A stretch of DNA of 64,000 bases, taken from NCBI RefSeq assembly GCF_011386835.1, contig NC_088791.1:2232001-2296000 (forward strand), given 5' to 3'. Below, piece by piece: positions 10,921-51,787 of the stretch. The stretch comes from Chrysemys picta bellii (taxonomy: Eukaryota). Below the pieces are notes generated by a model that saw nothing but the letters and a program-made list of their open reading frames with translations, was not told the DNA's origin and made no database searches. Every line of letters begins with the position of its first letter. Positions within the stretch are counted from its first letter, which is position 1. A program made the position numbers and the translations under genes.

Positions 10921-10948
10921 TGCACTGAGCTGAATGCTCAACGGAAAG

Positions 10949-11180: not shown

Positions 11181-14100
11181 CTAGGGTTTGCGTTGACAAA
11201 TGAAAGGGAATCTGTCTTCACAGGGAAAATCGTGCCATTTCTGAAAATCTAGAAAGAAAAACAAAAATGATCCCTGGGGTGAGGCAGGCTGGGCCGTTCC
11301 TGCTTGTACAGTGACCCCAATCCTGCCCAGTGCCAGGCCCGACGGAGAAGATCCCAGCTCCTGTGCACAGCCCTGAGGAAGAGGAGGGTGGGATGGAGCC
11401 CTGAGCAGACCAGATTGGGGCAGCCCCATCCTGCCGAGGCTCAGTGTGAAAGGGGAGACGCCTGGTCCATGTGCTCAGGGCCAGCTTTAGGCCGATTCAG
11501 CCGATTCGGCTGAATTGGGCCCCGCGCGAAGAGGGCCCCGCGCTGCAGCTGTTCACCCCGCCCACTTCCCCCTCCTCCCCTGCCCTGCACGCCCCGCCCC
11601 CTCCCCTGCTTCCCGCGAATCAGAGATTCGCGGGAAGTCTGAGACTAAGCAGCAGGGGCGGGCCGGCCGGCAGCACGAGGTAAGCTGGGGTGGGGGCGGG
11701 AGAAGGGCTCCGGGGAGGCGCGGCCCGTTCCCGCAGGCCCCAGGACGGCCCCCCCATCCCCCCCGCGGGCCCCCCCATCCCCCCCGCGGCGCGGCTCGGG
11801 TCCCCCCCCGGCCCCCCTGCGGCGCGGCGCGGCTGGGCTCGGGTCCCCCCCCCGGCCCCCCTGCGGCGCGGCGCGGCTCGGCTCGGGGCCCCCTGCGGCG
11901 CGGCTCGGCTGGGCTCGGGGCCCCCCCGGCGGCGCGGCTCGGGCCCCCCTGCAGCGCGGCGCGGCGCGGCTCGGGGCCCCCCCGGCCCCCCTGCGGCGCG
12001 GCTCGGCTCGGGGGCCCCCCCCGGCCCCCCTGCGGCTCGGGTCAGCCCCCCCCCCCCCCGGCGGCGCGGCTCGGCTTAGGGCCCCCCGGTCCCCCCCGGC
12101 GGCGCGGCGTGGCTCGGGACCTGGGGGCGGGGCTTGCAGCAAGCCCCACCCCCAGGAATCGGGCCCCGCTCTTGCTAAAGCCTGGTCCATGTGCTACTGC
12201 TCCTACCTCCCCCACCCCACGTGCCCCCCACCCCAGCCAGAGGGCAGAGGAGAGAGCGAGAGCCCTGCCCCGGGACTGGGGGCACCCGCTCAGGAACTGG
12301 GCTGCTGCCTCCCTCCCTGCTGAGTGAGCTGCCCCACAGCCAGGCCCCCTCCAGGCCCTGCCCGCCTGGGTCTGGCTACACCCATGGGAACATCTGTCCC
12401 AGGCAGGGCTCAGCCACCATGCAGAGGGGATGTGTCCCTGCCCCAGGAGTCAGTGTTACCGGCCTGCTGTGCGCGGAGCTGCACGTTCCTCCCTCAGACC
12501 CCGTTACCCCTCTGCTCTGGGGATGTCCTGGGGCTGGGCTAGGTGGGCTCTCCCCTCAGCAGCACCCCAGGCACAGCAGGGAGCTCCGCGGGGGGGTATA
12601 GGCCAGTCTCAGTGCCCTGTTCCCTTGGGTGCGGGTTTCTGCTGCTGCTTGACTCTATCCCCGTCCAGTGACTGCAGCCCTGGCTGTGCCCATCTGCCGG
12701 CATCAGGCCTGACGGACACTGAGCCTGTAACTCAAGACTGTATCATGATGCACATGTACCAGGGGCTGAGTTAAGGTTATATGGGCAGCCTTAGACTGGC
12801 ACTTCCTTGACTTTGGGACTTTCATGTTCCTTTAACATAATGTTTTGGGTGTAATTTAGGAATAGTTCATGAATGTAACAAAGAATTAATGGTTTAGTAA
12901 AATGTTAATCAATTATTACAGAGCCCAGTGCTCAATTGGCTGCTTGTTACCCTAGCATGTGACTGTCTAACACACCCGGCTCAGGGCGGGCTCAGGTCTG
13001 TCCCAGTGATAAATGGAATTGGTCTGAGAGCCCCGGCCCTGCCCCTCGCTCCCCCCACCCACTGGCACTGCAGGCCCCACACAGACACAGCACTCAGTGA
13101 TCAGAGTCAGGCGGGGGATTAGTTGTGAATTTCGCCCCTCTCCTGTTCACAGCCTGTCTGCAAAGCGATGCCTCGAATCCACCAACACTGGCTAGTCCAG
13201 GGGTTCTCAAACTTGGGGTCCTGACCCCTCATGGGGTCACAAGGTGGTTACATGGGGGTCGTGAGCTGTCAGCTCTGTGGGGCTGGCAGCCCCAAGTCAC
13301 CATTCAATTAAATGACCCCTCTCGTTGTGAATGTATAACGGGGGTCCCACTGAAAGGCTTGCTGTGAGAAAGGGGGCACCAATACAAAAAGGTGGAAAAC
13401 CACTGGGCTAGTCCCTGTTGCCGTCTGGGCTATTTGGAACTTTCACAAGCAGCCGGCGTGTGTGCAAATGCTTGTGAGTAACACAACCCTGTGAGGGGGA
13501 CAAATGCAGCTCTGGTGCCCACATCATTGTGTGGATCAGGGTTTGCACAGCAGGGGGGCAACAGCGACTCAGAGCCATCGCCCCTTAAAAGCTCACCAGA
13601 TTCCTCGTCTGGGGCCAGGGGTGTCTGTCTGTCTGTCTCTGTTTGCGCGTGTGTGCATATGTCTCTCCTGCCTGTCACTGGAGCAGACATATGACCTGAC
13701 CCAGGGGAGCTGGTAAGCAGCAGTTTTACCAGAAGCAACAAGGGGTTCTCTCCTGACTGCCCTCCCAGCATGGGGCAGGGAAGAGAGGAGCAGGGATTTG
13801 CACTCCATTGCGCACTGGGGCCAGCCTGGATCAGTATCTCAGGACCTGTGTGGTCAGAGCGCTGCCAGGATGGTAGGTCCATGGGGGTCTGAGCCGCCTG
13901 CTTACCTGTAACGTGAAATAACACTGTGCAGTGCTCATTTTTTCCCTTATTATTAGGTTGCCCTTTCTCCCAAGCTCTGAAGCTGACCGGGGATTCATCT
14001 GACCATCTCCAGGTTTGATCCTGCAGACACAAAGGAGAGCAGAGCCCCGGTAAACCCAAGGTTACACAGCTAGAGACATGCCCCGGAGCCGAGGGGCCAT

Positions 14101-17100
14101 GGGCAGGGCACGGACAGAAGCTGCCCAGTGACACTGGAGACACTGATCATTGCTATGAAATGTCAGCGCTGACAACCATGGCTACATTTACTGGCAGCTG
14201 AAGTTACACCAGGACCTGCCCAAGCCCTGGGAAGCATGAAAACAGCAAGTGAAGGGAGAGTCTCCAGCACCCCCTGTCCCTGCCACCCCCACATCGCCGA
14301 GGGGAGCGCACCCCGACCTGCCCTCAGGTTCCACGTCCATCTCCAGCCCAGCCCGACAGGCAGCACCTGCAGCGTCATCCCACGCGCTGTCCCGCAGCCC
14401 CACGCTGCTGCCCCCGTTCTCTCTCGTGTGCACAGATCCACGCGACGACGCTCCCAAAGCCCATCCACGGGGGAGTTACTCTGCTCCCCGCTGCAGAGAT
14501 CACGGCGGTAGGTCTGGGGGACGGGGGCGCTGGATGAAGCTGGGTTCGCACTGTCGGGGATCAGGGGCTGCAGCAGAATTAGTCACCTGGCAACCCAACC
14601 AGCGCAGCCAGCCGGCTGCAGGCCACCCGACTGCCTGCACCCCCTGCCTGGGCAGGAAGGGCAGCTGGCCGGCTCTTAGCCCAGCAATTCTCTGGCTGCT
14701 CAGTGTGGTCATGCCACGGCCGCGATCCTCCCTGTGCTGCTGCTCCTCGCCGGGCTCCTGTCCTGCTCCAGCCCTGCTCCTCCTCCTGCTCCTGCTTGTT
14801 TCCCAGCCTTGCTCCTGCTCAGTCCTGGCCGCCTCGGCTTGCTCCTGGTCCCGGCTTCCTGCCCCTGCCCCTGGGCTCCGGCGCTGACCCTTGATGTGCC
14901 TCCTGGGTCCCCTCCTGGCTCTGACCCTCGGCTTGGCTATTAATTCCTGACTCCGGCTCTGACCCTTGTATTGGATCCGCTTCCTGCTCCTGCTCCGACC
15001 ATTAGCCTGACTGCCCACGGCCCCGTCTCTATCGTGTGTTCCCTTGGGCTGTTTGCTGGGGAGGGAAGCAGACGCCGTCTGCGCCTGGAGTGGGCTGCCA
15101 GCACCTCAGCCGATGGGAAGGAGCCGGGAATGTTGGCGACAATCCCCTTGTTCTGTCCGTGCGTTCAGGGATTCGGGTGGGTCCTGATCCCCCCTTCCCT
15201 GTCCCTGAAGGGAGTTCTGGGTTATTAATTCCCCAGGATTTTGTACGGGGCCGTGTCCCTTGTTGGGCAGCTCCTCAGTGGGCGGGTGCAGGGGGAGCTG
15301 CGGAGGGGCAGAGGCTGACGCTGCCCAGGCTCAGTTGACCCACCGAGGGGTGAAAGGCTGTGACGTGGCCCAGGAGGTCTCTGTCTCTGGCATTTTATCA
15401 CGGTGAGACATGAGGAGGCCAAGAGCCGTCGGGCATGTTTAGCAAGTGACGACAGCCTGTAGGCTGGAGGGAGCCTCGTGCAGGAGTCGTCGCCGTCACT
15501 CCCGTCCCGCTCGGGTCCTGCACGGGAACGAACGGGGCTGGGCTGCCGATGCCTCCGCTCCGGGGCCTCCGCGGGATAGCACCAGCTGAGCAGCCCAGAC
15601 GCGACTGGCCAGGGGCTGGGCGCAGCGTGCGCGCTGCTGGGTCCCCGCTGCAGGCCCAGGCTTGTGGGGTTCGGGGGCGCCAGAGCCGCAGCCACCGAGC
15701 TTGGCCATCGGCCGCTTCCTCCCCCCGCAGCAGTGGCTGCAGCCGCGGCTGCTCCTGAGTCCCGCTGCCCAGGGGGGGAGAACAGCCGCCACCTGGCCCC
15801 GCGGGCCGCCTCACTCCTCTCCCTCCAGTACCGCCCAACTGAGTCCTGCCTGCTCGGGGCCAGGCCAGACTCTCACTCACCCCGGCCCCGCGCTCCTCCT
15901 GCATCTCCCGGGCCTCCCTCCAGCGCTTGCGGAGGGAGGAGGAAGGGTGAGCCTGGGGAAGGGGCCGGGATTCGGGGAGGGAGCCAATGGGGGAAGGAGG
16001 GGGCGGAGTCGTGGGGGGGCGGAGTCAGGGAGGGAGGGGGGCGGCGTGAGCTATTTGCTTGTCTCTCCAGTTTCCCAACCTAACATCGGTCGGGACGTGG
16101 GACAAACAAGGAAATATCGGGACAGTGCCGATAAAATCGGGACGTCTGGTCACCCTACAGGGAGCAGAAGCCGCCTCCCCGGCCAGGCTCTGTCAGGCAC
16201 CTGCCAGGTTGCAGAGCAGCACCCGGGAGGGGCCGGAGTCAGAAGTGGCTCCCTCCTGCCCCCCGCCCAGGCTCCTTCCCTCAGGGAGGGCAGCAGCAGG
16301 TGCCGTGGCGGCGGGGGCAGGCGCCGTGGGAGAACAGACCCCTCCACAGGGAACGTGGGGTGGGGAGAGTGTGGTCACCCTGGGCTGGGTGCGGGGGAGG
16401 GTTGGTCGGGGGGCACATGTGTGTAACCTCCCCTTTAGATCGTGCCCCCGCCCCCAGTATGGGGAGGCACCGGGCATCTAAGGGGCGCCCTTGGGGGAGG
16501 GGGAAGAATGGGGCGGAAAGAGGTGGAGCAGGGGCAGGAAGAGGCAGGGTGGGGTTCTGGGGGAGGGGGCTGAGGGCTAGAGACTGGACTGGAGAGTCCC
16601 CGCCCCCCCGGTGTGGTGGGTCCCTGGGCGCTAGTGTCACGAACGTGAATATTAATACCAACAGTTCACACTCTGCACCGGGCGCTGGGGATCGATCCTG
16701 TGATGGGAAACCCAGGCGGTTACAGCCCCTTTTCACCCCGTTCCCATGGAAATCCTGCTCTGGTGGCACCCCCGCCCCAAACAACAACCTCACTGAGCAG
16801 AGACACAGAGCCCAGGGGCCTGGGGAGGGGCTGCCCGAGGCAGAGCGGGCACCGGGCACTCACATGGTCAGGGTCTGAGAGTCCGATCCAGACATGATTC
16901 TTCTTTGTGGGGTCCCCCTTGATGTAATGGGCCAGCATATTCTTTTCTTCGGCACTGTGAATGGAGGCGAGATGGGCCCCAGGCCAATGCTGCTGGCAGT
17001 CCGCCTGGGACAGGAAAAAACAAAGCCAGTTACCCCCTTCCCGGCACTGCAGGGAGCAGCAGGCGCGAGTCCAGCACTGTTCTGGGCCCTGCCTCCCTCG

Positions 17101-20100
17101 GGCAGCAAGGGCTGTGAGGGGACAGGACCCCGTGTTAGCGCCTCTCCCCTCCCCAGGACCAATGGGAGGAGCAGGTAGAGCCGCCTCCCTCTCTCCATCC
17201 CCCTTCACCTTAGAGGTGCCCGAGGGGTGGTGTGTAACTATCCCAGGCCACTGTTTGGGGGCTCGATCCGGTTCTGTGTTGTACTGTTGAAACGGATCCC
17301 CTAGATACTGAGCTGGCCCGTGTTGCTGCTGGCTTCACCTGGCAGAAGGGTTACAAACATACTAAAATGTAACGTCCCTGTGGTGGGGAAAACACCACAG
17401 CAGCCCACCAAGGTAGCATTTCATTTCAGAAATGAGGAAGTTTGTGAAACAGAAATTAAAAGGTAAAGCACAAAAAGTGAAATCCCTGCAAGCTGCATGG
17501 AAACTTTTTAAAGACACCATAATAGAGACTCAACTTAAACGCATCCCCCAAAAAAACATAGTAAGAGAAACTAAAAAGTGCCACTGTGGCTAAACAAGAA
17601 AGTAAAAGAAGCAGCGAGAGGCAGAAAGGCATCATTTAAAAAGTGGAAGTTAAATCCAACTTGTTAAGTACATCAGAAGCAGGAAGCCTGCTAAACAACC
17701 AGTGGGGCCACTGGACAATCAAGATGCTAAAGCAGCACACAAGGATGATAAGGCCATTGCGTAGAAGCTAAATTAATTCTTTGCATCGGTCTTCACAGCT
17801 GAGGATGTGAGGGAGATTCCCAAACCTGAAACGTTCTTTTTAGGTGACTGTCCAGGTTCCCTCCACACTCTGAACTCTGTGGTACAGATGTGGGGACCCG
17901 CATGGAAGACCCCCTAAGTTTATATTCCACCAGCTTAGGTTAAAAACTTCCCCAAGGCACAAATTTCTTTCCTTGTCCTTGGACGGTATTGCTGCCACCA
18001 CCAAATGATTTAGACAAAAATTCAGGAAAAGAGTCACTTGGAGTCACTTCTTCCCCAAAATATTCCCCCAAGCCCTTTCACCCCCTTTCCTGGGGAGGCT
18101 TGAGAATAATGTGAGTACCAACCAGACCCTTTGTCCCTAGGACACTGAAAATCAAACAGGTTCTTAAAGGAAGAACTTTATGTAAAGAAAAAGTAAAAGA
18201 ATCACACCTGCAAAATCAGTATGTAAGGTAACTTTACAGGGTAATAAAAAGATTAAACACAGAGGATTCCCCTCTAGGCTCAGCTTCAAAGTTACAAAAA
18301 CAGGAATAAAACTCCCTCTTATCATAGGGAAAATTCACAAGTTAAAACAAAAGATAGTCTAACACATTTCCTTGCCTTTACTATCAACTTCTGTAATTTT
18401 ATATGTATAATTTCAGGTTTGTTTTCAGGTATGCTTCGTCTCTCTCTCCATCCAGAGAGGGAACAAAACAAAGAGAGCACAAACAAAACCTCCCCCCACC
18501 CCCGATTTGAAAGTATCTTCTTTCCCCATTGGTCCTTCTGGTCAGGTGTCAATTAGGTTAATTGAACTGATTAACCCCTTACAGGTAAATTGATTCTATA
18601 CCTCTGACCAGGAGGGATTTTATGTTACTGCATACCTAAAGGTTGATACCCTTCCCTTTATATTTATGACAGTGACAAATCTGAGGAACTGTCCCAAATT
18701 AAGGTATCATTAGATGAGGTTTTGGAACAAATTGATAAATTAAACAATAAGTCACCAGGACCAGATGGTATTAACCCAAGAGTTCTGAAGGAACTCAAAT
18801 GTAAATCTGAAGAACTACTAACTGTGATACCATATGATTGGAGGATACCTAATGTGATGCCAATTTTTTTTAAAAGCTTCAGCGGTGATCCTTGAAATTC
18901 AAGGCCAGTAAGCATAACTTCAGTACCAGAAAAAATGGTTGAAACTATAGTAAAGAAAAAAATTGCCATACACATACAGATGAACATAATTTGTTGGGGA
19001 AGAGTCAACATGGTTTTTGTAAAGGGAAATCATGCCTCACCAATCTACTAGAATTCTTCCTTTCCCTGACTCTGCACAGCTCCCGGAAGTGGCTGCCAGG
19101 TCCCTACAGCCCCTAGGCACATATGAGCCAGGGAGGCTCCATGTGCTGCCCCTGCCCGAGTGCCGGTTCCGCAGCTCCCATTGGCTGCGAACCACAACCA
19201 ATGGGAGCTCTAGAGCAGCCATTTCCTAGGAACTGCAATAAGTGCTTTTGGGACCCCATACCCTGATCCCCCTCCCACACCCCAATCCCCTGCCCCAGCC
19301 CGAAGTCTCCTCCTGTACCCAATCTCCCTCGTCAAACCCACACCCTGTTCACACCCCAACCCCGTGCCCAGCTCTGAGCACCTCCTGTACCCCAAACCTC
19401 TCATATCTGGCCCCACCCAAGAACCACCCTCCATTCAGAGCCATGACCCACCACCCGCACCTCAACCCCCTGCCCCAGGCCAGAGCTCTCTCCTGCACCC
19501 GTATCCCATCATCCCTGGCCCCACCCCAGAGGTCACACCCCCAGACTGAGCCTGCATCCCCTCCCTCACTCCAAACCCTTCGGCCCTAACCTGGAGCCCC
19601 CTCCTACACCCCCAGCTCAGAGCCTATACCCCCCCTGCACCCCAACTTCCTGCTCCAGCCCAGAGCCATCTCCCACACCCCAAATCCTTCATCCCTGGGC
19701 CCACCACAGAGCCCGCACCCCAGGCCGGAGCCCTCACCCACTCCCGCACCTGACCCCTTTGCCCCAGACAAGTGAAAGTGAATGATGGTGGGGGAGAGTG
19801 ACAGAGGATGGGGGGATGGAGCAAGTGGGGGTGGGGCCTCGGAGAAGGGGCGGGGCAGGGGTTTGAACTTAGAAAGTTGGCAACTCTACCCCCGCCCCTC
19901 CCACCGTAGCGGATTCCCAGCCTAGCCCAGCTCACTTCCTCTGATATTCACTCTAAACCGCCCCATCCCCCCAGCCTCCAGCTCCAGCCCAGCGCCCCTG
20001 AGCCCCGCTGCCCCAGCCTCTCACCTCAGCCTCCAGCCAGTTTTTCTCTTGGGGGACGTATCGATAGCAGCTGTCGTGGAAGGGTAGCCAGGACCTGGGA

Positions 20101-21492
20101 CATGCTACACCCTGTACCCCTGCAGAGAGAGGGGGCCGGGGGGCAATGGTGGGGACAGGACACCGTGGTTAGCGGCTCTTTCAGAGGCAGAGCCATTGCT
20201 TTAAATTAGGACAATTAACGTCGGGATCCCGTTTGGGGCTGTGTCTGGCTGGCAGGACCCTCCAGGCCCTGGCGCTGCAGGAAGAAGCTGGGTTTGCCCA
20301 GACCCCACATCGACAGAACAGGGCCCCTGGAACCCAGTCCTGAGCAGGGATCCCAGCCGGGCAGCACTGGAGCTGCCAGCCACAGTGGCCCTCATTCAGC
20401 TGTAGCCCTCGGGCAGAGGGAATTCCTGCCACCCTGATCTCCTCCCCGTCTCCCCCTGGGCCATGCAGGACAGTTGGAGCAGGGAAGCCAGCAGTGGGGA
20501 GGGGGGATGGGGAAGGGAACACCCAGGAGCAAGCGGTGAAGCTGGGGGAGCAATGGGGTTGGCACAGACTGGGACTAGAAGAAAATTGAGAGCAGGGGCC
20601 CAGTTCTGGATGGAAGGTTCTGGGGGGTTGTAGGAGGAGGGAAGGGAGAGAGGTGCCCAGGGAGATGGGACATAAAGGGGGGAATAGCAGGGATCTGAGG
20701 GGGCTGGGGTGGAGGAGAAGGGAACACTGCTCCTACCCCAGCCGTGTTGCTTGGGGGGGCTGGGAAAAGGTTCCCCCTCCCCTGCACTCACCGGCGGCGG
20801 GAAGCAGGGTGCCGTGGCGGAGTGGAGCAGGCTGGGGCTGGGCTGCTCCGCTTTCGCCACTGCCGGTGAGTGCAGGGGGGATCCTTTCCCCCAAACTCCC
20901 CCCTCCCCTGAGCGACACGGCTGGGACTGGGGCGAGGGAAGCAGAGCTGACTGCTCCCCGTCTTCCACTAATCCCCTGGGCCACTCTGGGCCAGCGGGGC
21001 CCCCAAAAGTGCCTCCCACAGCTTCTGCCTCCCAGACCCTCCAGGTCTTCGGCAGCGGGACCGTCAGTGCTGGCGAAGAAACCCGGAGTGAGTGAAGGGC
21101 CTGACGCCGAAGACCCGGAGCGCCGCAGCGGGTGGTGCCTTATTTTTTTTATTCCTCCCCCTGTTCCCTCCACCTGGCTACGCCACTGGTCCCACCCTAT
21201 CCTCAGGATAAGAGCAGACCCTGGGGGGACTTTCACCCACCTTCTCTCACCTGCTCCCTGGGGAGGGGCCGCAAGGCCTGGGCTCTCCCCAGGGCAGTGA
21301 CCCCCAGCAGCAGGAGACGGGCAGTGGCTCTGAGAGTGACGAGGGAAATGAATTCACTTCCCAGTTCCCACCATGGTCACCAGCACCCGGGGGCTACAGC
21401 TCCGAGGGGCCAGGCAGGGACTCACCTTCCAGCGAGGGGTTAAAGATCAGGCAGCCGAGGAGGCAGAGGCTGAAGTAGGCGACTGGCCCCAT
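11181..21492 (-). CDS. Secreted single-domain C-type lectin, copy 1, 161 aa (REG/group VII, eggshell- or snake-lectin-like). Coding exons 21492-21426, 20119-20025, 17004-16864, 14020-13906, 11248-11181
   Basis: All introns are GT-AG and phases 1,0,0,1 are consistent. Protein: MGPVAYFSLCLLGCLIFNPSLEGVQGVACPRSWLPFHDSCYRYVPQEKNWLEAEADCQQHWPGAHLASIHSAEEKNMLAHYIKGDPTKKNHVWIGLSDPDHDQTWRWSDESPVSFRAWEKGQPNNKGKNEHCTVLFHVTDFQKWHDFPCEDRFPFICQRKP. It has a signal peptide, 6 CTLD cysteines and the WIGL motif. Confidence 0.95.
11476..12195. mobile_element. 720-bp hAT-like insertion with degenerate GC-rich tandem repeats, in the last intron of gene 1 only
   Basis: Starts CAGGGCCAGCTTTAG and is bounded by the direct repeat GCCTGGTCCATGTGCT (11460-11475, 12180-12195). 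Unit 2 has a single copy of that 16-mer near 41726. Confidence 0.7.
13198..13405. mobile_element. hAT MITE with 8-bp TSD (unit 2 copy 42820-43027)
   Basis: CAGGGGTTCTCAAAC...GAAAACCACTG is flanked by GGCTAGTC on both sides. Confidence 0.9.
17430..19058 (+). mobile_element. Degenerate CR1 ORF2 fragment split by a solo LTR (unit 2 copy about 47890-49507)
   Basis: FASVFTAEDVREIPKPETFFLG|DKSEELSQIKVSLDEVLEQI...SPGPDGI.PRVLKEL rejoins across the LTR. Confidence 0.88.
17849..18671. mobile_element. Solo LTR with 5-bp TSD GTGAC (unit 2 copy 48312-49120)
   Basis: TG...CA ends; GTGAC at 17844-17848 and 18672-18676; removal restores the CR1 sequence. Confidence 0.9.
19058..19888. mobile_element. hAT-like non-autonomous fragment
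   Basis: Ends GTTGGCAAC(T/C)CTA, the reverse complement of TAGGGTTGCCAAC, with a C-rich subrepeated body. Confidence 0.5.
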
Positions 21493-22369
21493 CTTCTTGC
21501 TTCCCCTGGGGAGAAAACACACAGGGGAGATGGGGCCATGAGAGCCTGAGACACCCACCAGAGCAGCTCCCTTCTCTCATGGGGCATTTCACAAGGGGAG
21601 GTGCTTCGTTGCTGGGGCTGTTGCTAAAGGGCCTGGCTGGGCTGGAAGGGCCCCGAGAGGGATCCCGTCCCCCTGCCCCTGCCCTGGGGAACCGAGCTCG
21701 GAGCCCATCTCGCTGGATCCAAAGAGCCCTTCCTCTTCCACCCCTCACTGAGCCAGGTCCCAGCTTCTCAGTGGCCAGGCTCTACAAGCAGCAGCACCTG
21801 GGACTCCCCAACCAGATCTGCAGGTGGGGAGGAGCCAGGGGGAAGCAGGGAGGCCATGGTCACTCAGACGGGACCTGGGTCCCAGGCAACAGGGTCCCAT
21901 TTGCAGAGCAAAGCTGTTCTCAGAAGGGGCATTTGCCATCTCCCGCTGTCCCTCTCTCCCCCATGCTGGAGTTGGCAGGTCCCCATAGTAGCCACCTACA
22001 TGGAACGTGGAGGGAGGGCACAGGTGGCAGGGGGGAGAGTTTGGAAGAGGCACCAGTACCACCAGGATGGAGGCCAGTCTGTGTGCACGTGGCTGGAATG
22101 CCAGCTGCAGGTGCAGCACCTCTGCAATCGTTCTCTGACTAGAGAGCAGTTTAGGGTTAGAAACTTGGAGTCCTCTCGTGTTATCACCCAGCACCTGGTA
22201 CATGAAACACCCACTGACCCCACCCCGAGGCCTTTCCCCACTAACAGGTGTTTCAATCACTCTCATATTTCCATTTCCAGAGATCATGTGTCTGGAAAGC
22301 CAACACCATGTCGTTGGGATGGGCGGGAGGGGAGTGGTTATAGTTACTGCATCCCATGGTGGGGGCTGG

Positions 22370-22775
22370 TGTCACGGAGTGTGGGGGAGTCAGCGCCCGG
22401 CACCCCTCTTCCTGAGATTCACCGTGACTCGAGCCAGCCAGTAAAAGGGAAGGTTTATTGGACAATAGGAACGCAGTCTACAGCAGAGCTTGTAGGTACA
22501 ACCCGGACCCCTTAATCAAGTCCTTCTGGGGCGTTCAGGGAGCTTAGACCCCAGCTTGGGGTTCCCTGCGTTGCACCACCCAGCCCAAAAAGGAAACGAA
22601 AACCAAAACCCTCCAGCAGCATTCTCCCCCCGCCCCCTTCCTCCTCTCCTTTTTTCAGTCTCCCGGGCAGAAGGTGTCATTTCTCCCAACCCCCCTCCTG
22701 GCTCAGGTTACAGCTCAGGTATCTCCCTGCAAGGGCAGCCCCCAATCCCCAATGTAACTCCCCTGCTCCATCACA
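22370..22775 (-). mobile_element. Gypsy-related solo LTR in intron 1 of the lectin gene, TSD GCTGG (unit 2 copy 52665-53070)
   Basis: TGTCACGGAG...CCATCACA is flanked by GCTGG. Its start resembles the reverse complement of the Gypsy LTR end at 55213. Confidence 0.85.
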
Positions 22776-23097
22776 GCTGGGACCCCGTTGCACCATTATT
22801 AAGAAATGGGGTCCATTGGGGAGCCACCCTGCACAGTGATGATCCAGCAGGGACTGGACACAGACTGGAGGTTGGGCCCAGCTCCCAGAGGGGCAGAGCG
22901 CTGGGCACAGCTCCGCAGGGCATTAGGGTGCCGTGTGTAGGGCTGTGCGGGGTGGGAGGAAGGGGTGAGACAGAGACGGCCCCAGGGTCGGGGGACACAC
23001 ACAGGACAAGTTTGGCCACCCACCCCCGTAACAGATCAGCTGCCGCCAGCCACCCAGCGCAGGAGGAGGAAGAAGCTGGAGGAAGCCAGGGTCTCAC

Positions 23098-23185
23098 CTG
23101 ATTGTCTCGCTGGGTAGCTGCTCCGGTGCTAGGCCAGTCCAAGTGCAGCCTGCATGGGACACTGGCCGGACACGGGGCATTTATA
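23098..23185 (-). promoter_or_regulatory. TATA box (23185-23179) and non-coding exon 1 of lectin gene 1
   Basis: TATAAAT lies about 80 nt upstream of a CAG|GTGAGA donor at 23098. The acceptor TTTTCTCCCCAG| at 21506 is 13 nt before the ATG. The layout matches the 6-exon REG-type gene structure. Confidence 0.7.
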
Positions 23186-23548: not shown

Positions 23549-23662
23549 ATCCCCAGTGGGTACAGTCTGGTGTGGGGCTATTGGAGTCGTTGGAGTCAGA
23601 CCCCCAGCGGGTACAGTCTGGTGTGGGGCTATTGGAGTCCTTGGGGTCGGACCCCCAGCGGG
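23549..23662. repeat. 51-bp VNTR, 2 units, upstream of the gene 1 promoter
   Basis: Unit CCCCAGCGGGTACAGTCTGGTGTGGGGCTATTGGAGTCCTTGGGGTCAGAC. Confidence 0.9.
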
Positions 23663-41436: not shown

Positions 41437-44400
41437 CTAGGGTTTGCGTTTACAAATGAAAGGGAATCTGTCTCCACAGGGATAATCGTGCCATTTCTGA
41501 AAATCTAGAAAGAAAAACAAAAATGATCCCTGGGGTGAGGCAGGCTGGGCCGTTCCTGCTCGTACAGTGACCCCAATCCTGCCCCGTGCCAGGCCCGACG
41601 GAGAAGATCCCAGCTCCTGTGCACAGCCCTGAGGAAGAGGAGGGTGGGATGGAGCCCTGAGCACCCCAGATTGGGGCAGCCCCATCCTGCAAAGAGAGGC
41701 CGAGGCTCAGTGTGAAAGGGGAGACGCCTGGTCCATGTGCTACTGCTCCTACCTCCCCCACCCCACGTGCCCCCACCCCAGCCAGAGGGCAGAGGAGAGA
41801 GCGAGAGCCCTGCCCCGGGACTGGGGGCACCCGCTCAGGAACTGGGCTGCTGCCTCCCTCCCTGCTGAGTGAGCTGCCCCACAGCCAGGCCCCCTCCATG
41901 CCCTGCCCGCCTGGGTCTGGCTACACCCATGGGAACATCTGTCCCAGGCAGGGCTCAGCCGCCATGCAGAGGGGATGTGTCCCTGCCCCAGGAGTCAGTG
42001 TTACCGGCCTGCTGTGCACGGAGCTGCACGTTCCTCCCTCAGACCCCGTTACCCCTCTGCTCCGGGGGTGTCTGTGCCCGTGCCCGGGGGCTGCCCCGGC
42101 AGTAGTATTCCTGCTTAGTCAGCCCAGAGAGCGCCTAGGGAAGGACAGTCCTGGGTCTGGGCTGGGTGGGCTTTGCCCCTCAGCAGCACCCCAGGCCGAG
42201 CAGGGAGCTCCGCGGGGGGGTATAGGCCGGTCTCAGTGCCCCATTCCCTTGGGTGCGGGTTTCTGCTGCTGTTTGACTCTATCCTGTCCAGTGACTGCGG
42301 CCCTGGCTGTGCCCCTCTGCCGGCACCGGGTCTGACGGACACTGAGCCTGTAACTCAAGACTGTATCATGACGCACACGTTCCAGGGGCTGAGTTAAGGT
42401 TACATGGGCAGCTTAGTCTGGTACTTCCTTGACTTTGGGACTTTCATGTTCCTTTAACATAATGTTTTGGGTGTAATTTAGGAATAGTTCATAAACGTAA
42501 CAAAGAATTAATGGTTTAGTAAAATGTTCATCAATTATTACAGAGCCCAGTGCTCAATGGGCTGCTTGTTACCCTAGCGTGTGACTGTCTATCACACCCG
42601 GCTCATGGCGGGCCCAGGCCTGTCCCAGTGATAAATGGAATTGGTCTGAGAGCCCCGGCCCTGCCCCTCGCTCCCCACACCCACTGACACTGCAGGCCCC
42701 ACACAGACACAGCACTCAGTGATCGGGGCCAGGCAGGGGATTAGTTGTGAATTTTGCCCCTCTCCTGTTCACAGCCTGTCTGCAAAGCGACCCCTCGAAT
42801 CCACCAACACTGGCTAGTCCAGGGGTTCTCAAACTTGGGGTACTGACCCCTCATGGGGTCGCAAGGTGGTTACATGGGGGTCATGAGCTGTCAGCTCTGT
42901 GGGGCTGGCAGCCCCAAGTCACTATTCAATTAAATGACCCCTCTCGTTGTGAATGTATAACGGGGGTCCCACTGAGAGGCTTGCTGTGCGAAAGGGGGCA
43001 CCAATACAAAAAGGTGGAAAACCACTGGGCTAGTCCCTGTTGCCGTCTGGGCTTTTTGGAACTTTCACAAGCAGCCGGCATGTGTGCAAATGCTTGTGAG
43101 TAACACAACCCTGTGAGGGGGACAAATGCAGCTCTGGTGCCCACATCATTGTGTGGATCAGGGTTTGCACAGCAGGGGGGCAACAGCGACTCAGAGCCAT
43201 CGCCCCTTAAAAGCTCACCAGAGTCCTCGTCTGGGGCCAGGGGTGTCTGTCTGTCTGTCTCTGTTTGCGCGTGTGTGCATATGTCTCTCCTGCCTGTCAC
43301 TGGAGCAGACATATGACCTGACCCAGGGGAGCTGGTAAGCAGCAGTTTTACCAGGTGCGACAGGGGTTCTCTCCTGACTGCCCTCCCAGCATGGGGCAGG
43401 GAAGAGAGGAGCAGGGATTTGCACTCCATTGCGCACTGGGGCCAGCCTGGATCAGTATCTCAGGACTTGTGTGGTCAGAGCGCTGCCAGGATGGTAGGTC
43501 CATGGGGGTCTGAGCCGCCTGCTTACCTGTATTGTCAAATAACACTGTGCAGTGCTCATTTCCTCCCAAATTATTAGGTTGCCATTTCTCCCAAGCTCTG
43601 AAGCTGAACGGGGATTCATCTGACCATCTCCAGGTTTGATCCTGCAGAGACAAAGGAGAGCAGAGCCCCGGTAAACCCAAGGTTACACAGCTAGAGACAT
43701 GCCCCGGAGCCGAGGGGCCATGGGCAGGGCACGGGCAGAGGCTGCCCAGTGACACTGGAGACACTGATCATTGCTATGAAATGTCAGCGCTGACAACAAG
43801 GGCTACATTTACTGGCAGCTGAAGTTACACCAGGACCTGCCCAAGCCCTGGGAAGCATGAAAACAGCAAGTGAAGGGAGAGTCTCCGTCACCCCCTGTCC
43901 CTGCCACCCCCACATCGCCGAGGGGAGCGCACCCCGACCTGCCCTCAGGTTCCACGTCCATCTCCAGCCCAGCCCGACAGGCAGCACCTGCAGCGTCATC
44001 CCACGCGCTGTCCCGCAGCCCCACGCTGCTGCCCCCATTCTCTCTCGTGTGCACAGATCCACGCGACGACGCTCCCCAAGCCCATCCACAGGGGAGTTAC
44101 TCTGCTCCCCGCTGCAGAGATCACGGCGGTAGGTCTGGGGGACGGGGGCGCTGGATGAAGCTGGGTTCGCACTGTCGGGGATCAGGGGCTGCAGCAGAAT
44201 TAGTCACCTGGCAACCCAACCAGTGCAGCCAGCCGGCTGCAGGCCACCCGACTGACTGCACCCCCTGCCTGGGCAGGAAGGGCAGCTGGCCGGCTCTTAG
44301 CCCAGCAGCTCTCTGGCTGCTCAGTGTGGTCATGCCACGGCCGCGATCCTCCCTGTGCTGCTGCTCCTCGCCGGGCTCCTGTCCTGCTCCAGCCCTGCTC

Positions 44401-47400
44401 CTCTTCCTGCTCCTGCTGGTTTCCCAGCCTTGCTCCTGCTCAGTCCTGGCCGCCTCGGCTCGCTCCTGGTCCCGGCTTCCTTACCCTGCCCCTGGGCTCC
44501 GGCGCTGACCCTTGATGTGCCGCCTGGGTCCCCTCCTGGCTCTGACCCTCGGCTTGGCTATTAATTCCTGACTTCGGCTCTGACCCTTGTGTTGGATCCG
44601 CTTCCTGCTCCTGCTCCGACCATTAGCCTGACCACCCACGGCCCCGCCTCTATCGTGTGTTCCCTTGGGCTGTTTGCTGGGGAGGGAAGCAGACGCCGTA
44701 TGCGCCTGGAGTGGGCTGCCAGCACCTCAGCCGATGGGAAGGAGCCGGGAATGTTGGCGACAATCCCCTTGTTCTGTCCGTGCGTTCAGGGATTCGGGTG
44801 GGTCCTGATCCCCCCTTCCCTGTCCCTGAAGGGAGTTCTGGGTTATTAATTCCCCAGGCTTTTGTATGGGGCTGTGTCCCTCGGTGGGCAGCTCCTCAGT
44901 GGGCGGGTGCAGGGGGAGCTGCGGAGGGGCAGAGGCTGACGCTGCCCAGGCTGAGTTGACCCCCCGAGGGGTGAAAGGCTGCGACGTGGCCCAGGAGGTC
45001 TCTGTCTCTGGCATTTTATCACGGTGAGACATGAGGAGGCCAAGAGCAGTCGGGCATGTTTAGCAAGTGACGACAGCCTGTAGGCTGGAGGGAGCCTCGT
45101 GCAGGAGTCATCGCCGTCACTCCCGTCCCGCTCGGGTCCTGCACGGGAACGAACGGGGCTGGGCTGCCGATGCCTCCGCACCGGGGCCTCCGCGGGATAG
45201 CACCAGCTGAGTAGCCCAGACGCGACTGGCCAGGGGCTGGGCGCAGCGTACGCGCTGCTGGGTCCCCGCTGCAGGCCCAGACTTGTGGGGTTCGGGGGCG
45301 CCAGAGCCGCAGCCGCCGAGCGCCATCGGCCGCTTCCTCCCCCCGCGGCAGTGGGAGCTGCAGCCGCGGCTGCTCCCGAGTCCCGCTGCCCAGGGGCGGA
45401 GAACAGCCGCCGCCTGGTCCCGCGGGCTGCCCCCCTCCTCTCCCTACCACCCAACTGAGTCCTGCCTACGATCGGGGGCCTGCTCGGGGCCAGCCCGGAC
45501 TGTTACTCACCCCGGCCCCGCGCTTCCCCTGCGTCTCCCGGGCCTCCCTCCAGCGCTTGAGGAGGGAGGAGGAAGGGCGAGCCTGGGGAAGAGGCGGGGA
45601 TTCGGGGAGGGAGCCAATGGGGGAAGGAGGGGTGGAGTCAGGGCGGAGGGGGGGGTGGAGTCAAGGCGGCGGGGATGGCGCGAGCACTTCCAGGCTCAGG
45701 AGTATTTGCTTGTCTGTCCAGTTTCCCAACCTAACGTCGGTCGGGACGCGGGACAAACAAGGAAATATCGGGACAGTGCCGATAAAATAGGGACGTCTGG
45801 TCACCCTACAGGGAGCAGAAGCCGCCTCCCCGGCCAGGCTCTGTCAGGCACCCGCCAGGTTGCAGAGCAGCACCCGGGAGGGGCCGGAGTCAGAAGTGGC
45901 TCCCTCCTGCTCCCCGCCCAGGCTCCTTCCCTCAGGGAGGGCAGCAGCAGGTGCCGTGGCGGAGGGGGCAGGCGCCGTGGGAGAACAGACCCCTCCACAA
46001 GGAACGTGGGGTGGGGAGAGGGTGGTCACCCTGGGCTGGGTGCGGGGGAGGGTTGGTCGGGGGGCACATGTGTGTAACCTCCCCTTTAGATCGTGCCCCC
46101 CCCCCAGTATGGGGAGGCTCCGGGCATCTAAGGGGCGCCCTTGGGGGAGGGGGAAGAATGGGGCGGGAAGAGGTGGAGCAGGGGCAGGAAGAGACAGGGT
46201 GGGGTTCTGGGGGAGGGAGCTGAGGGCTAGAGACTGGACTGGAGAGTCCCCGCGCCCCCGGTGTGCTCGGTCCCTGGGCGCTAGTGTCACGAATGTGAAT
46301 ATTAATACCAACAGTTCACACTCTGCACCGGGCGCTGGGGATCGACCCTGTGATGGGAAACCCAGGCGGTTACAGCCCCTTTTCACCCCGTTCCCATGGA
46401 AATCCTGCTCTGGTGGCACCCCTGCCCCAAACAACAACCTCACTGAGCAGAGACACAGAGCCCAGGGGCCTGGGGAGGGGCTGCCAGAGGCAGAGCGGGC
46501 ACTGGGCACTCACATGGTCAAGGTCTGAGAGTCCGATCCAGACATGATTCTTCTTTGTGGGGTCCCCCTTGATGTAATGGGCCAGCATATTCTTTTCTTC
46601 GGCACTGTGAATGGAGGCGAGATGGGCCCCAGGCCAATGCTGCTGGCAGTCCGCCTGGGACAGGAAAAAACAAAGCCAGTTACCCCCTTCCCGGCACTGC
46701 AGGGAGCAGCAGGCGCGAGTCCAGCACTGTTCTGGGCCCTGCCTCCCTCGGGCAGCAAGGGCTGTGAGGGGACAGGACCCCGTGTTAGCACCTCTCCCCT
46801 CCCCAGGACCAATGGGAGGAGCAGGTAGAGACGCCTCCCTCCCTCCATCCCCCTTCACCTTCCCGGCCCCCACCCCGCTCGGCACAGCCACAGCCACCCT
46901 GTGCCCTGCTGGTGTCACCGAATCCCTCCCGCGCCAGCTCCTGGGCTCTGCTCTGAGCACTGGCCTGCCCTGGGCCATGGCTCTGCCAGACTCACCCGCT
47001 GTCATGCTGGGAGCAGAGCACAGGTGTGGCTGATGAAGGGCACTGTTCTGACCCCAGGCACTCGGACTCTGCCAGGCGCTCGGCTTGTGCACATGAGCAA
47101 TTAGCACCACATGACCTCAGAGCAGCCCTGGCCGAGGGGATTTCCTGGCAGATCTCACAGAGTCCTAGAGCCCGGGCTCCAGCCCAAGCGCAGAAGCCTA
47201 CACCGCAATGAAACACGCGTGGCAAGCGGGCAGCAGGGCGACTGGCAGAGAGGTTCGTGGCGAGGGCCAGAGCAGAGCCCCACAGAGAAACGCAGCAATC
47301 GACCGTGGGGGTGACGAGCGAGTGCCCGAGCAGTGCAGCGTGTAAGGTGCCTCCTTCCCCCCCTCCACACAGGGCGGGAGGTGAACTCTGCGGATAAACC

Positions 47401-50400
47401 TCTGAACTCTGGGGCTGCACTAGCCAAGGACAGCAACTGTGAGTGGGGTACAGAGAAGAGACGGGCACGTTAATGGAACATTTGGGTTGCTGGACTTAAG
47501 TACCGAGGGGAAAAGGACACCGCCCAACTTACTTGGGGGTGGGTTGTTTGTGTTTATGAACCCTAGTTGTGGTGTTTTCCAAAATTAATGCTGAGTTTTT
47601 CCCCTCCTTTTATTAAAAGTTTTTGCTACACTCAGACTCAGTGCTTGTGAGAGAGGAAGTATTGCCTCTTAGAGGTGCCCGAGGGGTGGTGTGTAATTAT
47701 CCCAGGCCACTGTTTGGGGGCTCGATCCGGTTCTGTGTTGTACTGTTGAAACGGATCCCCTAGATACTGAGCTGGCCCGTGTTGCTGCTGGCTTCATCTG
47801 GCAGAAGGGTTACAAACATACTAAAATGTAACATCCCTGTGGTGGGGAAAACACCACAGCAGCCCACCAAGGTAGCATTTCATTTCAGAAATGAGGAAGT
47901 TTGTGAAACAGAAATTAAAAGGTAAAGCACAAAAAGTGAAATCCCTGCAAGCTGCATGGAAACTTTTTAAAGACACCATAATAGAGACTCAACTTAAACG
48001 GATCCCCCAAATTAAAAAACATAGTAAGAGAACCTAAAAAGTGCCACTGTGGCTAAACAAGAAAGTAAAAGAAGCAGCAAGAGGCAGAAAGGCATCATTT
48101 AAAAAGTGGAAGTTAAATCCAACTTGTTAAGTACATCAGAAGCAGGAAGCCTGCTAAACAACCAGTGGGGCCACTGGACAATCAATATGCTAAAGCAGCA
48201 CACAAGGATGATAAGGCCATTGCGGAGAAGCTAAAGGAATTCTTTGCATCGGTCTTCACAGCTGAGGATGTGAGGGAGATTCCCAAACCTGAAACGTTCT
48301 TTTTAGGTGACTGTCCAGGTTCCCTCCACACTCTGAACTCTGTGGTACGGATGTGGGGACCCGCATGGAAGACCCCCTAAGTTTATATTCCACCAGCTTA
48401 GGTTAAAAACTTCCCCAAGGCACAAATTTCTTTCCTTGTCCTTGGACGGTATTGCTGCCACCACCAAATGATTTAGACAAAAATTCAGGAAAAGAGTCAC
48501 TTGGAGTCACTTCTTCCCCAAAATATTCCCCCAAGCCCTTTCACCCCCTTTCCTGGGGAGGCTTGAGAATAATGTGAGTACCGACCAGACCCTTTGTCCC
48601 TAGGACACTGAAAATCAAACAGGTTCTTAAAGTAAAAGAATCACACCTGCAAAATCAGTATGTAAGGTAACTTTACAGGGTAATAAAAAGATTAAACACA
48701 GAGGATTCCCCTCTAGGCTCAGCTTCAAAGTTACAAAAACAGGAATAAAACTCCCTCTTATCATAGGGAAAATTCACAAGTTAAAACAAAAGATAGTCTA
48801 ACACATTTCCTTGCCTTTACTATCAATTTCTGTAATTTTATATGTATAATTTCAGGTTTGTTTTCAGGTATGCTTCGTCTCTCTCTCCATCCAGAGAGGG
48901 AACAAAACAAAGAGAGCACAAACAAAACCTCCCCCCATCACCCCCCACCCCCGATTTGAAAGTATCTTCTTTCCCCATTGGTCCTTCTGGTCAGGTGTCA
49001 ATTAGGTTAATTGAACTGATTAACCCCTTACAGGTAAATTGATTCTATACCTCTGACCAGGAGGGATTTTATGTTACTGTATACGTAAAGGTTGATACCC
49101 TTCCCTTTATATTTATGACAGTGACAAATCTGAGGAACTGTCCCAAATTAAGGTATCATTAGATGAGGTTTTGGAACAAATTGATAAATTAAACAATAAG
49201 TCACCAGGACCAGATGGTATTAACCCAAGAGTTCTGAAGGAACTCAAATGTAAATCTGAAGAACTACTAACTGTGATACCATATGATTGGAGGATACCTA
49301 ATGTGATGCCAATTTTTTTTAAAAGCTTCGGCGGCGATCCTTGAAATTCAAGGCCAGTAAGCATAACTTCAGTACCAGAAAAACTGGTTGAAACTGTAGT
49401 AAAGAAAAAAATTGCCATACACATACCGATGAACATAATTTGTTGGGGAAGAGTCAACATGGTTTTTGTAAAGGGAAATCATGCCTCACCAATCTACTAG
49501 AATTCTTCCTTTCCCTGACTCTGCACAGCTCCCGGAAGTGGTTGCCAGGTCCCTGCAGCCCCTAGGCACATATGAGACAGGGAGGCTCCATGCGCTGCCC
49601 CTGCCCGAGTGCCGGTTCCGCAGCTCCCATTGGCTGCGAACCACAACCAATGGGAGCTCTAGAGCAGCCATTTCCTAGGAACTGCAGTAAGTGCTTTTGG
49701 GACCCCATACCCCAATCCCCCTCCCACACCCCAATCCCCTGCCCCAGCCCGAAGTCTCCTCCTGTACCCAATCTCCCTCCTCCAAACCCACACCCTGTTC
49801 ACACCCCAACCCCGTGCCCAGCTCTGAGCACCTCCTGTACCCCAAACCTCTCATATCTGGCCCCACCCAAGAACCACCCTACATTCAGAGCCATGACCCA
49901 CCACCCGCACCTTAACCCCCTGCCCCAGCCCAGAGATCTCTCCTGCACCCGTATCCCCTCATCCCTGGTCCCACCCCAGAGCCCACACCCCCAGAATGAG
50001 CCCGCATCCCCTCCCTCACTCCAAACCCTTCGGCCCTAACCTGGAGCCCCCTCCTACACCCCCAGCTCAGAGCCTATACCCCCCCTGCACCACAACTTCC
50101 TGCTCCAGCCCAGAGCCATCTCCCACACCCCAAATCCTTCATCCCTGGGCCCACCCCAGAGCCCGCACCCCAGGCCGGAGCCCTCACCCACTCCCGCACC
50201 TGAACCCTTTGCCCCAGACAAGTGAAAGTGAATGATGGTGGGGGAGAGTGACAGAGGATGGGGGGATGGAGCAAGTGGGGGTGGGGCCTCGGAGAAGGGG
50301 CGGGGCAGGGGTTTGCACTTAGAAAGTTGGCAACCCTACCCCCGCCCCTCCCACCGTAGCGGATTCCCAGCCTAGCCCAGCTCACTTCCTCTGATATTCA

Positions 50401-51787
50401 CCCTAAACCGCCCCATCCCCCCAGCCTCCAGCTCCAACCCAGCGCCCCGGAGCCCCGCTGTCCCCAGCCTCTCACCTCAGCCTCCAGCCAGTTTTTCTCT
50501 TGGGGGACGTATCGATAGCAGCTGTCGTGGAAGGGTAGCCAGGACCTGGGACATGCTACACCCTGTACCCCTGCAGAGAGAGGGGGCCGGGGGGCAATGG
50601 TGGGGATAGGACACCGTGGTTAGAGGCTCTTTCACAGGCAGAGCCATTGCTTTAAATTAGGACAATTAACGTTGGGATCCCGTTTGGGGCTGTGTCTGGC
50701 TGGCAGGACCCTCCAGGCCCTGGCAATGCAGGAAGAAGCTGGGTTTGCCCAGACCCCACATCGGCAGAACAGGGCCCCTGAAACCCAGCCCTGAGCAGGG
50801 ATCCCAGCAGGGCAGCACTGGAGCTGCCAGCCACAGTGGCCCTCATTCAGCTGCAGCCCTCGGGCAGAGGGAATTCCTGCCACCCTGATCTCCTCCCTGT
50901 CTCCCCCTGGGCCATGCAGGACAGTTGGAGCAGGGAAGCCGGCAGTGGGGCAGGAGGGGAACTCCCAGGACCAAGGGGTGAAGCTGGGGGAGCAATGGGG
51001 TTGGCACAGACTGGGAATAGAGAGGAAATCGGGAGCAGGGGCCCAGTTCTGGATGGAAGGATCTGGGGGGTTGTAGGAGGAGGGAAGGGAGAGAGGTGCC
51101 CAGGGGGATGGGACATAAAAGGAGGGAATAGCAGGGATCTGAGGGGTCTGGGGTGGAGGAGAAGGGAACACTGCTCCTACCCCAGCCGTGTTGCTTGGGG
51201 GGGCTGGGAAAAGGTTCCCCCTCCCCTGCACTCACCGGCGGCGGGAAGCAGAGTGCCGTGGCGGAGTGGAGCGGGCTGGGGCCGGGCTGCTCCGCTTTCG
51301 CCACTTTCCCCCAAGCCCCATCCCCTGAGCGACACGGCTGGGGCTGGGGCGAGGGAAGCAGAGCTGGCTGCACCCCATCTTACACTAATCCCCTGGGCCA
51401 CTCTGGGCCTGCCGCCGAAGACCCGGAGCGCTGCAGCGGGTGGCGCCTTTTTTTTTTGACCCTCCACCTGGCTACGCCACTGGTCCCACCCTATCCTCAG
51501 GATAAGAGCAGACCTTGGGGGGGACTTTCACCCACCTTCTCTCACCTGCTCCCTGGGGAGGGGCCGCAAGGCCTGGGCTCTCCCCAGGGCAGTGACCCCC
51601 AGCAGCAGGAGACGGGCAGTGGCTCTGAGAGTGACGAGGGAAATGAATTCACTTCCCAGTTCCCACCATGGTCACCAGCACCCGGGGGCTACAGCTCCGA
51701 GGGGCCTGGCAGGGACTCACCTTCCAGCGAGGGGTTAAAGATCAGGCAGCCGAGGAGGCAGAGGCTGAAGTAGGCGACTGGCCCCAT
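41437..51787 (-). CDS. Secreted single-domain C-type lectin, copy 2, 161 aa. Coding exons 51787-51721, 50570-50476, 46654-46514, 43641-43527, 41504-41437
   Basis: Same exon sizes (67, 95, 141, 115, 68) and splice sites as copy 1. C-terminal part: VWIGLSDLDHDQTWRWSDESPFSFRAWEKWQPNNLGGNEHCTVLFDNTDFQKWHDYPCGDRFPFICKRKP. Confidence 0.95.
47150..47814 (+). mobile_element. LTR-like fragment; only its 3' about 145 bp survive in unit 1 (17211-17355)
   Basis: Ends GGGTTACA and contains ATTAAA. The 5' boundary and TSD are not found. Confidence 0.5.

Follow-up and report, generated by a model that had tools for sequence, protein, structure and literature searches.

The window analysed here is a stretch of 64,000 nucleotides (nt) from the turtle Chrysemys picta bellii (NCBI RefSeq assembly GCF_011386835.1, contig NC_088791.1, positions 2,232,001 to 2,296,000 of the forward strand; all coordinates below are those of the window). 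It carries two tandem genes, copy 1 and copy 2, each of which encodes a signal peptide and one C-type lectin domain (CTLD). The twins differ at 13 of 486 coding nt, and none of the differences is synonymous. Amino acid change in exons 4 and 5 runs at approximately four times the neutral rate, while exons 1–3 are constrained. The most likely mechanism, which we consider probable, is positive (diversifying) selection toward different ligand specificities in two co-expressed secreted lectins. The window holds a tandem duplication of ~30 kb, each unit of which contains an intact gene for a secreted single-domain lectin, and these genes are part of a large array close to one end of chromosome 1 in turtles. 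Since the duplication, the scaffold encoded by exons 1–3 has remained under purifying selection in both copies, and both have fixed replacements in the segments encoded by exons 4 and 5, whose loops and strands form the canonical CTLD ligand site. These changes may alter binding, the ligand may be a glycan or a microbial surface, and a physiological role is likewise presumed.

Twin genes and the neutral yardstick

Both genes were assembled from motif matches and splice sites. Each is located on the minus strand (copy 1 spans 21492 to 11181 and copy 2 spans 51787 to 41437) and contains five coding exons of 67, 95, 141, 115 and 68 nt, with GT-AG ends at all introns. The coding sequence (CDS) of each copy is 486 nt long (161 amino acids and a stop codon), and both open reading frames (ORFs) are intact. 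The stretch containing the TATA box and the putative non-coding first exon has the same sequence in both copies. The features are as follows.

23098..23186, minus strand: copy 1 TATA box and putative non-coding first exon; TATAAA at 23186-23181, donor AG/GT at 23098/23097; matches the N-terminal extension of the Emys and Trachemys NCBI models
21426..21492, minus strand: copy 1 coding exon 1; ATG and signal peptide; same sequence in copy 2
20025..20119, minus strand: copy 1 coding exon 2; start of the CTLD and first Cys pair; same sequence in copy 2
16864..17004, minus strand: copy 1 coding exon 3; helices and WIGL motif; a single twin difference (P99L); connected to exon 4 by spliced contigs
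13906..14020, minus strand: copy 1 coding exon 4; QPN loop and E-H-C; 9 differences in 115 nt, all non-synonymous
11181..11248, minus strand: copy 1 coding exon 5; WHD, last two Cys and stop; 3 differences, all non-synonymous; spliced joint in three runs
10935..11180, minus strand: copy 1 3′ untranslated region (UTR); ends just beyond the AATAAA that starts at 10954, 227 nt downstream of the stop codon (end coordinate approximate); matched by a contig with 0 mismatches over 11100-11176
53392..53480, minus strand: copy 2 TATA box and putative non-coding first exon; TATAAA at 53475-53480
51721..51787, minus strand: copy 2 coding exon 1
50476..50570, minus strand: copy 2 coding exon 2
46514..46654, minus strand: copy 2 coding exon 3; L99 derived
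43527..43641, minus strand: copy 2 coding exon 4; W121, D137 and N138 derived; L126, G128 and F113 ancestral
41437..41504, minus strand: copy 2 coding exon 5; Y147 and G150 derived; K158 ancestral

The upstream ATG used in the NCBI models of Emys, Trachemys and Chrysemys, which adds a 32-residue extension (MPRVRPVSH...), overlaps the TATAAA box (TATAAATG) and probably sits 5′ of the transcription start. If so, the 193-residue isoforms are likely annotation artefacts, and the 161-residue form with the signal peptide is the real product.

From copy 1 to copy 2, the 13 differences give ten replacements: P99L, V113F, G121W, K126L, K128G, H137D, V138N, F147Y, E150G and Q158K. Only one difference falls in the first 303 nt, twelve fall in the last 183 nt, and codons 126, 128 and 138 are doubly changed. 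The original prediction, which was made from the letters of the window alone, had listed these differences, their lack of synonymous changes and the ten replacements exact to the base, and its account of their distribution along the CDS and of three double codons is confirmed.

The twins' own non-coding DNA was employed as the neutral yardstick, with its CpG-aware and transition/transversion-aware rates applied to the CDS. The non-coding divergence is 2.6% (287 of 11040 well-aligned columns), with 172 transitions to 115 transversions and 36% of the mismatches at CpG. For the whole CDS, the neutral model predicts 3.25 silent and 8.5 replacement differences, a silent fraction of 0.276. The absence of silent changes among 13 differences then has P = 0.015, in agreement with the predicted value near 0.02, or P = 0.02–0.04 when the doubles are treated as single events. 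In exons 4–5, 12 replacements are observed against 3.09 expected (P = 9e-5); the P value is 4e-4 when they are counted as 11 events and 0.005 with the most conservative count of 9 events. Exons 1–3 show the opposite, with 1 replacement observed against 5.4 expected (P = 0.03), and the clustering of at least 12 of the 13 differences in the last 183 nt has P = 7e-5. The 300-nt intron flanks of exon 4 are only 1.7% diverged and the divergence peaks on the exon itself, which indicates that the local mutation rate is not raised.

To polarise the changes, we used the orthologs of Emys (L001) and Trachemys (L002; Trachemys scripta, CM023056.1) as outgroups. The best protein matches are all from turtles (Emys orbicularis 88% and Trachemys 87% identity, over 88% of the query), none of them identical, and the window is ~94–96% identical to the Emys and Trachemys loci (blastn). 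The twins are nearest to each other in all four introns (1.6–3.9%), which suggests that the duplication is younger than the Emys and Trachemys species splits. The Trachemys ortholog is 3.2–3.9% away in introns 2–3 and the Emys copy P0001 is 3.6–5% away in introns 2 and 4; the multiple alignment is rough for intron 1 and for Emys intron 3 because of big indels and gives larger figures there. The twin non-coding divergence of 2.6% amounts to roughly two thirds of what separates the twins from the Trachemys ortholog.

Polarisation yields 14 substitutions over both lineages, all of which are non-synonymous. Copy 1 gained V113, K126 (TT>AA), K128 (GG>AA), H137, V138 and Q158, and copy 2 gained L99, W121, D137, N138, Y147 and G150. 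Two codons changed independently in each lineage: at codon 137, the ancestral TAC became CAC in copy 1 and GAC in copy 2, and at codon 138, the ancestral GAT became GTT in copy 1 and AAT in copy 2. These changes on both lineages, with positions 137 and 138 hit in each, argue against the decay of one redundant copy. Relaxed drift of that kind, or the onset of pseudogenisation, would fit the whole-CDS divergence of 2.7%, which equals the intron divergence of 2.6–2.7%, but we regard it as improbable. The ORFs, splice sites, TATA box and first exon are intact in both copies, the twins are separated by no silent change, stop or frameshift, and the differences are spread unevenly, with 1 observed against 7.9 expected in the first 303 nt. 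In addition, contigs that fit both copies occur at similar depth in one sequencing run (X25, described below).

The candidate ligand site and the wider family

The CTLD matches PF00059 over residues 47–159 (E = 8e-25, 88.1 bits, cut-off 22.6). Both copies contain six Cys (C29, C40, C57, C132, C149 and C157), made up of an N-terminal pair and four core Cys, and the W93-I-G-L96 motif of a long-form CTLD, all of which are invariant or nearly so across 23 family members. Judging by the fold, the six Cys would pair as disulfides. Both twins also contain QPN (residues 122–124), E130 and WHD (residues 144–146). Among canonical site-2 references, EPN is the mannose-type and QPD the galactose-type tripeptide, and the Asn and Asp of WND bind Ca2+ and sugar. 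In the rattlesnake venom lectin RSL, N119 is a ligand of both Ca2+ and galactose (PMC4583214). The QPN of the twins is a hybrid of the two tripeptides; close paralogs contain QPN or QPD, and remoter family members contain EPN. E130 is invariant in the family alignment and aligned with RSL E104, while the WND position is occupied by WHD in the twins and in 36 of the 68 aligned family members, and by WND in 14.

The candidate site was mapped by sequence alignment to 1JZN (RSL), the nearest solved single-domain relative (E = 4e-29), together with a review of its ligand contacts (PMC4583214). Residues 3–134 of the 1JZN chain align with query residues 29–160 at a constant offset of 26. The Ca2+ ligands of RSL are Q96, D98, E104, N119 and D120; galactose forms hydrogen bonds with Q96, D98, E104 and N119, Y100 touches the sugar ring, and Q121 reaches the 2-OH via a water molecule (PMC4583214). 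The equivalents of the five Ca2+ ligands in the twins are Q122, N124, E130, H145 and D146. Position 126, which differs between the twins, is the equivalent of Y100, and position 147 is the equivalent of Q121. Position 121 immediately precedes Q122, position 128 lies within the loop from N124 to E130, and position 158 is the equivalent of Q132 in the sodium site of RSL. By homology, the changed residues are thus placed at the CTLD binding face, and the alignment with the Ca2+/galactose site of 1JZN bears out the predicted location around QPN...E-H-C and WHD at the ligand site. An AlphaFold2 model of copy 1, built from a 23-sequence alignment, was poor (mean predicted local distance difference test score 44.7), and no structural inference was drawn from it.

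The twins belong to a family that is old and turtle-wide. At least 8–13 protein clusters (90% identity) match per turtle genome, including side-necked and soft-shelled turtles, and in five species the sampled loci map to chromosome 1, 1.4–2.9 Mb from one of its ends. The signal peptide hardly varies across the family, whereas 62 distinct 12-residue loop motifs occur among 68 sequences. When 138 positions are ranked by entropy over 66 homologs, position 126 is 3rd, 138 is 4th and 137 is 5th (Mann-Whitney P = 0.012). The original prediction had spoken of a young family of secreted lectins that diversify in specificity. The secreted CTLD and the selection stand, but only the twin pair is fairly young, and glycan specificity had been assumed. 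The roles put forward for the family (immunity, eggshell or a secretion) are likewise candidates.

Site-specific selection was examined with a self-written GY94/F3x4 implementation of models M1a and M2a on 12 turtle coding sequences, with separate trees for exons 1–3 and exons 4–5. For exons 4–5, the likelihood ratio test (LRT) statistic is 41.2, with omega2 = 6.2 in 15% of sites, and sites 104, 113, 126, 127, 128, 137, 138, 151 and 153 have a naive empirical Bayes (NEB) posterior >0.5. Without the twins, the LRT statistic is 34.7 and sites 126, 127, 151 and 153 are called. For exons 1–3 the LRT statistic is 27.7, with sites 99–101 included, while 12 simulations under M1a gave LRT values of at most 6.1. 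Six of the ten twin positions (99, 113, 126, 128, 137 and 138) are therefore called selected family-wide, of which only 99 and 126 are called without the twins. Parsimony counts without the twins give an omega of 1.1 at the ten twin positions against 0.76 at the other codons of exons 4–5, which is suggestive only. A failure of omega to exceed 1 once more paralogs were added had been raised as a result that would speak against selection; in these data omega exceeds 1 at several sites, which supports diversifying selection across the family, as read from the coding sequences. An omega above 1 over the whole of exons 4–5 was also considered for the family and was rejected, because pairwise NG86 values are mostly <1; only a subset of sites exceeds 1.

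Conversion, transcription and points of doubt

The main rival to positive selection is micro-conversion. A few complex events (multinucleotide mutation, or micro-conversion from other paralogs of the array that resemble the twins closely enough to pair in their exons but not in their introns) in tolerant loops, with relaxed constraint and clustered mutation, could also give rise to the pattern. Adjacent pairs make up 6 of the 13 exon differences but 10% of those in non-coding DNA (Fisher P = 0.002), omega across the family is close to 1, and V113, K128, H137, N138 and Y147 are each present in other paralogs. The family is also mosaic at the level of exons. Exon 4 of the Trachemys ortholog (L002 23119-23233, CM023056.1) has diverged by 17% from copy 1, against ~4% for the adjacent intron 3; it resembles the exon 4 type of Emys P0003 and Chrysemys P0017, as if a cassette the size of one exon had been replaced. 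In Emys, the tandem neighbours P0001 and P0002 (L001 and L003, CM051430.1, 2.86–2.94 Mb) are mosaic as well, with 9.6% divergence in intron 2 and 3–4% in introns 3–4. Their exons 4 differ at residues 126, 137 and 138, as do those of the window twins, and thus form a parallel case.

Nevertheless, we consider a few complex events an unlikely source of the twin differences. Polarisation resolves the double change of codon 138 into two independent single hits, and a nucleotide of codon 137 was hit twice, which leaves at least 11 events in exons 4–5 against 3.1 expected (P = 4e-4). No synonymous marker of the sampled paralog lineages has been imported into exons 4–5 of the twins, and the synonymous states that distinguish the twins from other lineages in these exons are all shared between them; any conversion tract would thus be shorter than ~18 nt. 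No donor k-mer for the derived patches was found in the window or in 10 further turtle loci, a search that did not cover the rest of the Chrysemys array. Finally, K126 in the context NNKGK, V138, W121, D137, G150 and Q158 occur seldom or nowhere else among 66 homologs.

To examine transcription, four sequencing runs of uncertain type were compared with 11100-17050; their RNA origin is deduced from splice joints and from the ratio of exon to intron depth. In three runs, contigs join 11248 to 13906 and 14019/20 to 16863; the joints have GT..AG ends when read on the minus strand and are covered to depths of 40, 478 and 4790. In run X1, the exon depth is 5000–10000 compared with ~20 in introns. 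At least three samples of one organism thus contain abundant, spliced transcripts of the gene or its closest copies. In run X25, the 3′ UTR contigs show 0 and 4 mismatches, matching copy 1 and copy 2. A spliced contig of exon 5 and exon 4 from the same run shows 3+10 mismatches compared with 3+9 expected for copy 2, and another with 1+4 mismatches is copy-1-like; their depths are similar. Silence of one copy had been named beforehand as a finding that would reduce the changes to relaxed drift, and by contig mismatch counts both copies appear to be transcribed. At 16957 (exon 3, codon 70), RNA contigs of three runs contain a synonymous CAC>CAT change (coding strand), which is fixed in two runs and reaches ~28% of the depth in the third; the variant represents a polymorphism or else a further paralog.

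Several points weigh against positive selection as the explanation of the twin differences. The sample is small, with 13 differences, and the test on silent changes alone gives a P value of about 0.015–0.04. Over the whole CDS, 13 non-synonymous differences are not significantly above the 8.5 expected; the excess is visible only with exons 4–5 split off, and this partition, although it follows natural exon borders, was suggested by the data. Two tandem double substitutions in copy 1 (TT>AA and GG>AA) lie 4 nt apart and may have arisen together in a single complex mutation, or by micro-conversion from a paralog that lies beyond the window, and the exchange of exon 4 cassettes does happen in the family, as in the Trachemys ortholog. 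Positions 121, 147, 150 and 158 have no family-level support. The site-model code was self-written, its NEB calls are based on 12 sequences, and recombination within the region is ignored. The region-wide pairwise NG86 omega is mostly <1 (median 0.53 in exons 4–5), as would be expected if only some sites are under selection. Transcripts were assigned to the copies by mismatch counts and not by seen bases; one additional change is present in the best copy-2-like contigs, and five are present in the spliced contig that resembles copy 1. With WHD in place of WND, canonical Ca2+/sugar binding appears doubtful on the aligned sequences.

The duplicated array and its relation to known lectin systems

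Self-comparison of the 64-kb window (blastn) reveals a tandem segmental duplication of ~30 kb, with two units that are ~96% identical. The units and the repeats within the window are listed below.

6915..27003, no strand assigned: duplication unit 1, from self-comparison and repeat families
36259..62066, no strand assigned: duplication unit 2, from self-comparison and repeat families; extra insertion at ~54750-58784
23551-23662: 51-nt tandem repeat, 2.2 copies, ~400 bp upstream of the copy 1 promoter
53866..54434, no strand assigned: 51-nt tandem repeat, 11.2 copies (97% matches), ~400 bp upstream of the copy 2 promoter
27201-28067: Myb/SANT ORF of PIF/Harbinger-type remains
30258-31262 and 32390-33220: DDE_Tnp_4 ORFs of PIF/Harbinger-type remains

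A third unit, 95% identical to 7430-8029, begins at ~62062 and runs to the window edge at 64000. The array extends past the window, with a third gene copy likely just outside, and some of the RNA contigs with intermediate mismatch counts may originate from that third copy. The insertion specific to unit 2 (54750-58784) contains an ORF with an integrase zinc-binding domain at 57236-58252 and is probably a retroelement fragment. The remains of a PIF/Harbinger-type transposon (27201-33220) lie in ~9 kb exclusive to unit 1. The twins contrast in the copy number of the 51-nt repeat upstream of their promoters, and their expression could differ as a result.

Two introns show further local features. 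Intron 4 is 2657 nt long in copy 1 and 2022 nt in copy 2, and that of copy 1 contains a very GC-rich, imperfect tandem repeat at 11770-12118 with periods of 32–132 nt. In intron 2, the stretch 17807-18830 differs from 48270-49279 by only 5 mismatches in ~1000 nt, compared with 2.6% overall; it is also the stretch best conserved against Emys (96.5%), and its GC content is lower. This near-identity may reflect fewer CpG sites, and a conserved element or a recent conversion tract is possible.

Tandem arrays are error-prone in assembly and this one runs beyond the window, so we considered whether the twins are haplotypes or a mis-assembled collapsed or expanded repeat. Such an assembly artefact is highly improbable. 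The units differ by 2.6%, by many indels and by different transposon insertions, which is well above allelic variation in a turtle. Contigs in independent runs match each copy by mismatch count, and Emys also has tandem neighbours at this locus.

It is possible, although we put it forward tentatively, that the turtle array as a whole is a germline-encoded variable recognition repertoire. Such a repertoire would extend over a megabase scale and combine an invariant signal peptide and a non-canonical QP(N/D)...WHD site with a loop sequence of its own in nearly every member, possibly with a different metal or a non-glycan ligand. The twins would then represent diversification in progress, with positions 137 and 138 hit independently in both daughters and positions 126, 137 and 138 differing again in the Emys pair.

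Among solved structures, the best single-domain relatives of the twins are the snake-venom galactose lectins (SVgalLs), namely RSL (1JZN) and BJcuL (5F2Q, E = 1e-28). The two groups are alike in length, align at the constant offset of 26 and share the Q-P-x, Glu and Asp ligand positions, and the turtle proteins carry NCBI names derived from snake lectins ('BpLec-like' and 'lectoxin-like'). However, QPD is fully conserved in SVgalLs (PMC4583214). The twins contain QPN instead and have Lys (copy 1) or Leu (copy 2) at position 126, the equivalent of Tyr100; they also contain WHD instead of WND, so that His occupies the place of the Ca2+- and sugar-binding Asn, and have no link to venom.

REG/lithostathine and the avian eggshell C-type lectins are, like the twins, small secreted proteins with a single CTLD, and are also found among the PDB matches (lithostathine 3e-26, REG4 2e-25, OC-17 3e-20 and SCA-1 3e-19). 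Within the eggshell group (OC-17, struthiocalcin and dromaiocalcin; the XCA locus), turtle 'dromaiocalcin-1-like' proteins are 46–51% identical to the twins. In birds and reptiles the XCA genes are reported to form a cluster, and turtles to have two XCA1 paralogs (PMC8144736). Compared with XCA and REG, the twins belong to a separate and much larger turtle subfamily with a QP[ND]/WHD site. The 2013 painted-turtle genome paper describes expanded 'NK C-type lectin-like' predictions, most of which lack transmembrane domains (PMC4054807). Our literature search found no description of the turtle lectin array, and nothing relevant in turtles under the NCBI family names.

The twins provide a clean case, calibrated on introns, of how tandem duplicates diverge adaptively, in which the residues concerned are aligned with sugar-contacting positions. 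They also point to a large, highly expressed and apparently unstudied array of secreted lectins in turtles. As a natural pair that is ten residues apart, they offer a ready-made experiment on CTLD loop residues and specificity, and they could reveal the effect of His for Asn in WHD on metal or ligand binding. Tandemly duplicated lectin genes are well known to undergo diversifying selection at their binding loops, so that to a specialist the case is neat rather than surprising. The snake-venom C-type lectin-like proteins and the C-type lectin-like receptors of natural killer (NK) cells are tandem families with diversifying selection at their binding loops. By analogy, the family of the twins would share its mode of evolution with such arrays: birth and death of genes, a conserved scaffold and signal peptide, hypervariable loops, a few sites with omega >1, and mosaicism of exons.

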